Position numbers and translations under genes: made by a program. A stretch of DNA of 45,432 nucleotides, from the NCBI GenBank assembly GCA_020536535.1, contig JAHLWZ010000178.1, positions 1-45,432 of the forward strand, given 5' to 3'. The stretch's first letter is position 1. Each line of letters begins with the position of its first letter. The notes beneath the pieces are model-generated. The model worked only from the letters and a program-made list of their open reading frames with translations. It was not told the origin of the DNA and did no database searches. Shown one piece after another: positions 28,967-32,308 of this stretch. Source of the DNA: Pelomyxa schiedti. Its lineage: Eukaryota > Protista > Evosea.

Positions 28967-31900
28967 ATGTCTAGTACGGTGACAATCAACGTTGTGGGGT
29001 TGTCGTGTGACACGACCATCACCAAGGGATTCCGCAACGACCAAGAGAATCCCGTGGAGGTTGCCCTTGCCCCCATTTTTCAATTTGTTACTGTTGCTAT
29101 TTGTTCAAACTCCAACGCTGCAGTAAGGTTGTTGTTAACTGGTTCCACTCTCGAGCTAATGTCTACTCGTTGGTGGCACAAATTGGTGACAAAATCATTG
29201 AAGGTTTGCTTCGTTTGGCTTTGCTTGTTCATATTCATATATGTACATATTAAGTTTAAGTGATAACCGCGTTCAGGGAAGTCCGTTGAGAGCTCTAAAG
29301 CAAACGACACCTACGATGACGCTGTGGCATCATCGAGGACTGCACTTCTTGGAGCACTCGAAAACGATCCGCTTCTGAAAGAGCGGTTGTCCTTTTCTTT
29401 GGGGAATGTGCCTCCACATTGCGTTTGTAGCGTTAAGCTGTCATATGTGGAAGAATTAGTTGTGGGAGCAGGGTGTTTGGTGAAGATAGAAACTCCGCTC
29501 ACTGCACTCACATTCTCTGGGGGACTTAAAAATACAACTGGGGAGACGACAGTCAGTTTGAACTTGGCAATGCCCCGGGCCATAATTGGTGTCAACTCAA
29601 CAAATGAGGAATTCATAAAAAGCAAAGAAGGGCTTGTGGGGGAAACTCTTGGTATGGAATTCATTTCCTCCAAAGCGGATGGATCGTTCTCGGCATCTGT
29701 ATTGCTTACACCTAGCGTTCCCGTTATGCTTACTGCTGTCCGCCTTCCCTCAACTCCAAGCCCCGAAGACACAAATGCAGTTGTTTGTGAACTTTCCTAT
29801 TCAAAACACCTTGCTATCAAGGATTCTTCAGTCAGTACAATGGATACTGATGTTGACATTATTTTCATAGGTTTTTTCCCCACTCTTTTTTTCCCCTTCT
29901 CAAAGTATTCCTTACAGTTGACCAATCTGGTTCCATGGTGCGATTAATTTTTCCTTTCTTTGCGTCTGATTGCTTCAATAAAGAGTGGGAAAAAAATTAC
30001 GCAAGCTAGCAATGCGGTTGCACTAATGCTAGCAAGCTTACCCATTGGATGTCAGTTCAATGTTGTAGGATTTGGTTCTGACTTTGGCTCTGTGTTTGAG
30101 ACAAGCAGGTAACTGACGGTCATTCAAACGCCACTAAATGCCGCAGGGCATACGGCGATGAAACTCTAGCTCTTGCCCGAGAGTACACACTGCAAATGGG
30201 AGCTACTAGAGGTGGCACTCGACTACTTCCTCCCATTCAATTTGTATTCAACACGTGTAAAGAATCAAGTAACCTTCCACCCAAGTAACCGCTAATCTAA
30301 TCTTCGTCATATCACAGTGAGACAGCGCCCTCTCAAACTGTTTGTTCTCACCGATGGTCAAGTGGATGACACAGTGAGCCTTTTGCAGTTTGTTGTTCAA
30401 CAAACACACAATACCCCAGCTTGTGTCTTTTCGTTTGGGATTGGAAATGATGTAAGCAGAAACCTTGTCAGTGGGTTAGCCAGTGCCAGTGGAGGGAAGG
30501 CAGTTTTTATAACAGACAAGGACGAAATTGAGGGACCGGTTCTTTCTCAACTAGCTGCTGCTCTGGGTTCTACTACAAGGAATCTTGGCATTGAATGGGG
30601 TTCTCCAATGGATAAAGTGATACCAGCAGCAATGCCATCCGTTCTTACCGAGGAAATGACCGCAACCCAGCATACAATATCGAGAAGTGAATCTACCATC
30701 AGTGCTACAATCACATATACAGGCTTACAAACGCCACTACAGATAAATGCCACTGCTCTATCTCCAATGTTTTCTTCATTACTTGGCCGCATCGCCGCAG
30801 CAAGAGAAATTAAAGCACTCACCGATCTTGACAACGAAACACCTCAAGAAGACATCAAGCGAAAAGTTATAGAGCTTGCAACAAAGCACAATTTTGTGTC
30901 CCGTTACACTTCACTTGTTGCCGTAGAGAGATCTTCAACGGCATCTGTGGATGGAAGTATGACGAGCGTGGTCATTGCTGTTCCCGTTGTTGCCTCTCAA
31001 ATTGTGGTGCCGACAAGTACTTCCTCCTCATCCTCTCAAGCCTCCCGTAAACACCATTGTCATAAACATAAGGCACTACGAACTGCGCCTGACTCTAGCT
31101 CGTCCATTCCCGCCTCAGCAGTACGAAAAGGAAATTTTGTTGTAATGAACGGCCACATAGTGCAAGTAACAGAAACCAGCACAAGCAAAACCGGGAAGCA
31201 CGGCCATGCCAAAATGCACATCACTGCGATAGATCCAAGCACTGGTAAAAAATATGAAACCATTGAAACAACCTCCAGCAATATTGATCAAGGTGATATC
31301 CAAACTCAAGAATACGACTTGCTCGATGCTGTATGCGTAACGTCTGCATGTCATTACCTGATTTCCCTTTTAGGATAGCAGCAGTGATTTAATTACATTA
31401 CTCGAATCAGATGGCAACACTAGGGAAATCATTCTGAAAGGCGCCCTTCTTGAGAAGGTACGACAATTTTCCTCTTCCGGCATTCTGATTGTTGCACAGG
31501 CAAGACGAATCGTTCAAGCAGGAGGAACGGCCCAAGTGAGAGTTGCCCGGTCAATTTCTATCCCAGATTTAGAGACCGTTCTCAGTATTACATCTACTGA
31601 TACACCTGATGATGTACTATCTCAACCTACTCCACAACCACAGCCCCAAGTACAGTCACAACCACAACCACAACCGCAAGTACAAGTACAACCCATTCCT
31701 GTACCACAAACGCAGCCACAAGTACATTCAAGTTCTGCAACATCTTCGCGAATGAGTCCTCTGAACAAATTGTGCTTCCTACAAAAAGCACAAGGCTACT
31801 GGGAGCTTAATTCCACACTCACTGATATTCTGGAAGCTGCACTTTCTGATGCAACTAGTTGTGGGGACACCATTATAACACAGATAACAGCCCACTTTGC

Positions 31901-32123
31901 TCCATCAGTATCTCAGCAAACAAAACACAACCTATGGGCAACAGCTCTTGCCATTGCTGCCCTCGAACTTCTGCACAAAGACCAGGAAACCCAATGGAAA
32001 CTAATCAAAGCTAAGGCTGTGCAATTCCTACAGGCAAACATTAGTAGTCCCACAGCACTGGAGCAGTTCATTACCAATGCAACAACATTCCTTACAACTC
32101 ACAGTCCCCGGTGCAGACACTGA
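28967..32123 (+). CDS. VIT-vWA (VWA5A-like) protein with an inserted eIF5A-like module
   Basis: VIT: KGFRNDQENPVE..FSLGNVPP..VKLSYVEEL. vWA MIDAS: IIFI|VDQSGSM, GGT, LFVLTDGQV, VFSFGIG. Then FVSRYTSLVAVE, an eIF5A-like segment at about 31095-31595, and C-terminal LQKAQGYWEL..WATALAIAAL..WKLIKAKAVQFL. Start uncertain. Confidence 0.88.
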
Positions 32124-32308
32124 ACAAAATGTGTTTTGAGAAAAAGAACAAAAGGAACCCCTTTTTCCCTTATTTTTTCCTTTCTTCCCTCGCTTCTTCG
32201 GCTGCGAAAGGAGCGACTTCTGCTTCCCCAAACAACTTCGGTGATGACTTCCCAGAAGAAGCCCAAGACAAAAAAAAAAAAAGGAAAAAAGACGAAACCA
32301 CGAGTGTG

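Follow-up and report, generated by a model that had tools for sequence, protein, structure and literature searches.

Why does a VIT-vWA protein of the protist Pelomyxa schiedti carry, in its variable linker, a copy of eIF5A with an intact hypusine loop? The gene lies in a stretch of 45,432 nucleotides (contig JAHLWZ010000178.1, positions 1 to 45,432; the window in the following). eIF5A is routinely called the sole hypusine-containing protein (PMC11637365, PMC7864902), and the fusion is a natural candidate exception to this single-substrate rule. A Pfam scan of ten other long ORFs in the window gave no match.

The gene has nine exons. All joins are in phase, and the product of 916 aa has the same length and register as the deposited protein KAH3765998.1 (P0001; the query corresponded to residues 344-681). 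Exon joining was checked for phase and length, exons were searched individually, and full-length searches were done with the deposited P0001. The domain order is VIT-vWA-VITpt2-[eIF5A]-CTD, with VITpt2 and core named according to PMC10539598.

28967..32123, + strand: nine-exon gene for the 916-aa protein KAH3765998.1 (in-phase exon joining, deposited protein)
28967-29059, 29128-29203, 29277-29870, 29918-29937, 29984-30108, 30147-30268, 30318-31330, 31374-31457, 31500-32123, + strand: exons 1 to 9
28973..29446, + strand: VIT domain, aa 3-113 (Pfam VIT, 52.1 bits; cut-off 26.5)
29855..30523, + strand: vWA domain with intact MIDAS, aa 250-412 (Pfam VWA_3, 76.2 bits)
30899..30928, + strand: end of the ITIH-like core, a VITpt2-like strand, aa 538-547, from which the variable linker runs (conserved column block, T541 invariant)
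30929..31105, + strand: N-side tether, predicted disordered, Ser-rich, aa 548-606 (pLDDT <50 at 541-605; alignment)
31106..31598, + strand: eIF5A module, modelled with both domains, aa 607-742, split by two introns (Pfam, PDB match, Foldseek)
31187..31213, + strand: hypusine loop K634-K642 (human K47-K55), with the modifiable Lys637 at 31196-31198
31331..31373, + strand: intron 7, 43 nt, GT..AG, removed in an RNA contig
31458..31499, + strand: intron 8, 42 nt, GT..AG, in frame and stop-free, removed in two RNA runs
31599..31754, + strand: C-side tether, predicted disordered, Pro/Gln-rich, aa 743-794 (pLDDT <50 at 743-794)
31755..32120, + strand: VWA5A-type helical CTD (conserved Q..G.W and W.T.LA blocks; helical in the model)

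The fusion was found on a single RNA contig. Record 18 of run X3 is one piece of 1202 nt (30857-31330, 31374-31455 and 31498-32143) that starts in the last helix of the core and runs via eIF5A into the CTD, indicating that introns 7 and 8 are both spliced and that the contig joins the scaffold to eIF5A and the CTD. A second RNA run (X4) confirmed intron 8 and two upstream introns (5 and 6). Introns 5-8 are thus spliced in RNA contigs, and intron 4 is suggested by a 12-letter loose end; introns 1-3 were placed by frame and homology only, and exons 1-2 are without RNA cover. Contigs of DNA type are unbroken across the junction (X1 record 2, 28997-32141; X2 record 10, 29178-31311). All four runs (X1-X4) come from one study with at most two samples, the genome was derived from single-cell material, and the contigs show presence only, so that minor isoforms may exist. 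At five positions (29654, 30288, 30763, 31861 and 31906) a single base differs between runs or from the assembly; none of the five is within the eIF5A module. With the RNA contig spliced and the DNA contigs unbroken, neither a chimeric assembly nor intron retention nor separate transcription found support.

An earlier reading made from the sequence alone (the sequence-only reading) had looked to one transcript and contiguous DNA across this junction, and contigs now support both, from 30857 to 32143 in RNA and from 28997 to 32141 in DNA. Its placement of the lysine codon and of the two GT-AG introns was exact, the introns being absent from the RNA contig. Its vWA-to-eIF5A reading frame (30317-31378) stands as a fusion, and Pfam places both parts in one exon and one frame, but not in its borders: the GTG at 30317 is an intron/exon border, exon 7 starting at 30318, and the last 15 codons are intron. 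Exon 7 (30318-31330) encodes in that frame the C-terminal half of the vWA domain (VWA_3, E=3e-5) and the eIF5A N-domain (IF5A-like_N, 75.8 bits; cut-off 27.1).

The modifiable lysine is encoded by AAG (31196-31198) within the STSKTGKHGHAK loop. On full-length P0001 the IF5A-like_N score was 74.2 bits, against the same cut-off. The module matched eIF5A in the PDB (E=1e-17), gave a BLASTP alignment of 37% over 142 aa, and aligned with eIF5A chains in Foldseek over about 140 columns (TM by target 0.66-0.76). The Pfam profile for the OB half (eIF-5a, PF01287) gave no match in P0001 and E=0.011 in the homolog from Mastigella. Although Pfam misses the OB half, the extent of the Foldseek alignment indicates that, in the model, the insert is the full two-domain fold, with both eIF5A domains present. 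The proposal of a two-domain eIF5A fold in the linker is supported in this form, the N-domain by Pfam and the OB half by BLASTP and the model. Reuse of this fold outside translation has a precedent in fungal Hex-1, which forms peroxisomal crystals as a stand-alone protein and lacks the hypusine loop; in the insert, by contrast, it is the loop that is conserved.

The insert loop is identical to that of the host's canonical eIF5A at nine of nine positions, compared with 20 of 43 in the flanking beta-strands. R26/K27 are kept, whereas K34, P37, K39 and F64, among others, are lost. Across eight fused inserts, 67 of 72 residues of K47-K55 were identical to the host canonical eIF5A, with only H53 varying (H/S/L), against 118 of 344 in the surrounding N-domain. 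The comparison supports selection on the fused loop, as had been suspected from a loop kept while the rest diverged: the loop is near-invariant in the eight copies, and five free Pelomyxa paralogs have rewritten theirs. Free viral eIF5A shows an equal pattern (loop 176/180, flanks 362/854). The pattern thus shows selection but not which partner selects, and loop conservation alone cannot choose among explanations.

Elsewhere the Pelomyxa genome has two canonical eIF5A genes and five divergent free paralogs (contigs C937, C4, C627, C1163 and C796 of the genome G000; loci L004, L005, L030, L025 and L032). The loops of these paralogs are altered or rewritten, and two or more of the five have lost the modifiable Lys. 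It also has an intact-looking DHS gene with the EAVSWGK motif. The separate canonical eIF5A and DHS that the sequence-only reading had looked for are therefore present, as two genes and one, and the insert, an internal part of a spliced 916-aa product compared with about 155 aa for stand-alone eIF5A, is not the cell's working eIF5A.

The MIDAS of the vWA domain comprises D256-x-S-x-S (D256, S258, S260), T327 and D356. Met1 leads straight into the VIT domain (aa 3) without a hydrophobic leader, exons 1-2 being free of RNA cover, and the protein looks cytosolic by this feature. The model of the full protein is weak overall (pTM 0.32), with pLDDT of 67-82 in the insert outside the hypusine loop; its best Foldseek match is ITIH1 (E=1e-18), and contact between CTD and vWA is not visible at this pTM. 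In the alignment the N-side tether has a His/Lys patch in common with Mastigella. A VWA5A-type helical CTD had been expected after eIF5A and was recovered there, with the conserved blocks listed above; it is the counterpart of the MVP-interacting domain of PARP4 (PMC10539598, PMC10450202).

By the sequence and fold features tested, P0001 is a VWA5A-like family member, and not an eIF5A, an NLR or a PARP4. With VWA5A/BCSC-1 and Dictyostelium Vwa1, which are intracellular VIT-vWA-CTD proteins (PMC10539598), it shares the domain order, an intact MIDAS and a CTD that ends a long disordered loop, but its loop holds a folded eIF5A module, and neither PMC10539598 nor the other literature found has such an insert. 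With eIF5A/aIF5A it shares, in the model, the two-domain fold, and further a loop identical to the host's and an N-domain above the Pfam cut-off. Unlike these, the insert is embedded in 916 aa, lacks the acidic N-terminal tail, has diverged flanks and an OB half below Pfam detection, and is truncated in relatives. ITIH4 (PMC7793589) likewise has a VIT-vWA core followed by a variable region, and its bait logic with vWA-dependent trapping serves as our working model; ITIH4 is secreted, however, with an unstructured, protease-susceptible bait, whereas P0001 looks cytosolic, its bait would be a copy of a specific host protein, and trapping is presumptive. PARP4, the vault PARP (PMC4038475, PMC10450202), has the same core and CTD and a positively selected segment in the same linker, but P0001 is without the BRCT and PARP catalytic domains that precede VIT there. 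The integrated domains of plant NLRs (PMC4759884) offer a parallel, in that an expanded family of scaffolds has diverse host domains fused to it at a single site. That scaffold is unrelated, P0001 having no Pfam match to NB-ARC or LRR, and immune output is a conjecture here.

The fusion is not unique to Pelomyxa. As the sequence-only reading had suggested, profile searches recovered the architecture elsewhere; with the Pelomyxa copy, there are at least eight fused copies among the matches listed in the HMMER scan. The same domain order occurs in Mastigella eilhardi (P0151) and Arcella intermedia (P0152) and in environmental sequences, namely an ENA contig (P0003), two JGI proteins (P0011, P0015) and P0020, whose intron-poor contig is probably from a ciliate. 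A PARP4-like protein from the Entosiphon sulcatum transcriptome in EukProt (P0030; transcriptome contamination is possible) reads PARP-VIT-vWA-14-3-3-eIF5A, with a PARP domain matched by Pfam and a 14-3-3 fragment plus eIF5A N-domain after the vWA core. The inserts of Pelomyxa, Mastigella and one JGI protein appear to have both eIF5A domains; the C-domain is absent from the Arcella, P0020 and P0030 inserts. The most reduced candidate, L065 (ERZ842401, 116-2215, + strand, AT-rich), has VIT and vWA domains, and directly behind the core only the nine loop residues follow; Pfam matches 14 residues there. It came from a pattern search, but the probability that chance alone would place such a match there is, roughly estimated, far below 1/1000. 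The contig ends in adapter 24 codons past the loop, and any CTD would lie beyond the read sequence.

Pelomyxa, Mastigella and the ENA contig form one starred clade in the scaffold tree. That tree requires 4-5 changes in all, and the AU test does not reject a single clade (p=0.168). In the insert tree (60 columns, long branches) seven of the eight inserts group weakly and only the PARP4-like copy stands apart. Several independent origins thus found no firm support, and given the AU result and the weak insert tree we claim neither one origin nor many. An ESM Atlas search returned nothing above 0.82, and a search of the open literature, subscription journals being outside its reach, found neither the fusion nor the insert pattern described. 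What is new here is a VWA5A/PARP4-type scaffold with an eIF5A insert, conserved across distant protists.

Is the linker specific for eIF5A? A Pfam scan of 112 post-core linkers of VIT-vWA proteins found about 18 with an insert at this position, namely synaptobrevin six times and ubiquitin, calmodulin, eIF4G, Hsp70, mu-adaptin with Cdc37, FHA, IBB and zf-UBR as single cases; about 85% of linkers had no Pfam domain. Carriers include Balamuthia, Luapelamoeba, Clastostelium, Acytostelium and the mussel Mytilus. The Pelomyxa genome alone has 43 VIT matches on about 33 contigs, and at least mu-adaptin (C1153, C238), R-SNARE (C824, C399) and FERM (C869) occupy this site among its roughly 33 loci. On a contig from Logan SRR25018408, a VIT-vWA-histone H3-CTD gene (L169:5990-8542, - strand) lies two genes from a VIT-vWA-eIF5A gene. 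Some single-case inserts could be merged gene models, but the H3, ubiquitin, calmodulin and eIF4G modules each have the core on one side and the CTD on the other, as would be expected of insertions. Across the family, eIF5A thus looks like one of many interchangeable host-protein modules at the linker, and the idea of a device specific for eIF5A gives way to this more general pattern. Bacterial effectors and viral proteases often target SNAREs, ubiquitin, calmodulin, histones, eIF4G, Hsp70 and 14-3-3, or use them as cofactors.

Several observations adjoin these data. Two genes with IBR domains (RBR ligase-like) lie beside the VIT-vWA-histone H3-CTD gene, and in an environmental protein (P0045, JGI 3300012689) the VIT-vWA linker has, by eye, repeats like the histone H3 tail. 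The ubiquitin domain lies in the VIT-vWA linker of a Mytilus californianus protein (P0038), so that the insert pattern reaches animals. In Pelomyxa an open frame of 1308 aa (L015, C841) leads from a vWA domain through an unassigned middle part, which by eye resembles longin, to a further VIT domain.

By analogy with ITIH4 and the integrated domains of plant NLRs, we lean towards the eIF5A insert being an integrated bait: it would draw a foreign factor that attacks eIF5A, and the vWA scaffold would provide the readout. The VWA5A-type scaffold, presumably cytosolic, would display the tethered eIF5A copy between its two disordered tethers. The foreign factor might be a protease, a modifying enzyme or a binder, and might come from an intracellular bacterium, a symbiont or a virus; recognising the eIF5A loop, it would engage the bait in place of genuine eIF5A or in addition to it. 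Cleavage or binding in the linker loop might then release the CTD, and the MIDAS-bearing vWA might trap the attacker or pass it to SCF or vault machinery; these are the weakest steps. Host DHS may modify the bait, matching it to mature eIF5A.

The bait proposal is favoured by links of this linker to conflict or switching in related proteins. ITIH4 is a bait whose cleavage leads to a vWA-dependent inhibitory complex (PMC7793589). PARP4 shows recurrent positive selection on a segment (PMC4038475) that is the disordered link from the ITIH-like core to the MVP-interacting domain, the latter common to VWA5A (PMC10450202), and PMC10539598 predicts for this family a CTD that packs against the vWA domain and autoinhibits it. 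In line with a bait, the module is folded in the model and lies in the stretch between ITIH-like core and CTD, it is transcribed and spliced, and its hypusine loop is kept across distant protists; paralogs carry other host modules at the same linker, and some eIF5A copies are cut to the N-domain or the bare loop. Against it, conservation from Pelomyxa to Mastigella is long-lived, slower than a typical arms race, and the large majority of linkers lack a Pfam domain. The literature search found no effector or other attacker of the eIF5A loop.

Whatever its function, could the insert be modified? DHS binds eIF5A through the N-domain alone, almost the whole of which it requires, and makes no contact with the C-domain (PMC10042821). 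On this basis the Pelomyxa insert could serve as a substrate and bare-loop L065 could not, and we regard deoxyhypusination of the Pelomyxa insert as plausible, with its chances a little short of even. That modification is the main point, the protein being a second DHS substrate with deoxyhypusination as a spermidine- or NAD-dependent switch of the scaffold, strikes us as quite improbable. The whole N-domain, the loop identical at nine of nine positions and the long tethers, which leave it free, would suit such a switch, as would the lack of DHS contact by the C-domain; the diverged flanking strands, the variation of H53 among fused copies and the remaining insert types, which are unrelated to polyamines, argue against it. 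The suggestion of a DHS decoy or regulator survives as a decoy, though one that more probably lures a foreign attacker than the host DHS: a role confined to DHS is weakened by the existence of L065, given that DHS needs almost the whole N-domain.

A host-facing adaptor is unlikely, but has a concrete basis. Here the insert would mimic eIF5A and recruit the host's eIF5A partners (DHS, exportin-4) to a VWA5A-SCF or vault hub for sequestration or turnover, each paralog serving another pathway. Dictyostelium Vwa1 associates with FbxwD and SCF (PMC10539598), what is kept of eIF5A, the N-domain and loop, is the DHS interface (PMC10042821), and Pelomyxa itself encodes an intact-looking DHS as well as major vault protein at six loci. 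Such an adaptor leaves insert turnover and the positive selection on the PARP4 linker unexplained, and L065 cannot present the roughly 1050 A2 N-domain interface used by DHS. Docking to the ribosomal E site or RNA, by which the module would bring the scaffold to stalled ribosomes, appears very unlikely to us. Both domains appear retained in Pelomyxa, Mastigella and one JGI protein, and Pelomyxa has R26/K27; the C-domain, however, is below Pfam detection in Pelomyxa and lost in the Arcella, ciliate-like and PARP4-like copies, which weakens the ribosome targeting proposed in the sequence-only reading, and K34, P37, K39 and F64 are gone while two canonical eIF5A genes exist. A neutral passenger in a long and tolerant linker, or an artefact of chimeric assembly or gene model, might be entertained for a single-cell genome with all runs from one study. 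It is hardly credible in view of the spliced RNA contig, the unbroken DNA contigs, the orthologous fusion in the Mastigella transcriptome and the ENA contig within one starred clade, and a fused loop that stayed invariant while free paralogs rewrote theirs.

The VWA5A/PARP4 scaffold is poorly understood; in humans it occurs in a candidate tumour suppressor and in the vault PARP. The integrated bait would give this scaffold a testable function, with the linker as bait display. If this reading is true, the list of inserts would predict the host proteins attacked by protist pathogens, as with plant NLR integrated domains, and the eIF5A loop would be among the targets. Only tentatively do we extend this to the full proposal that VWA5A/PARP4-type VIT-vWA proteins are an undescribed integrated-bait immune system of protists, and that this member may be a second natural (deoxy)hypusinated protein whose loop would reveal microbial or viral attack on the hypusine loop of eIF5A.

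A viral origin of the insert was also considered and dropped, as none of 22 viral eIF5A loci lay in a long fused ORF and the tree gave no link to the insert. Many giant-virus contigs in IMG/VR (L037-L058) encode a stand-alone eIF5A with intact loop. In the Pelomyxa genome, major vault protein repeats were found at six loci (C810, C516, C352, C518, C850 and C93).
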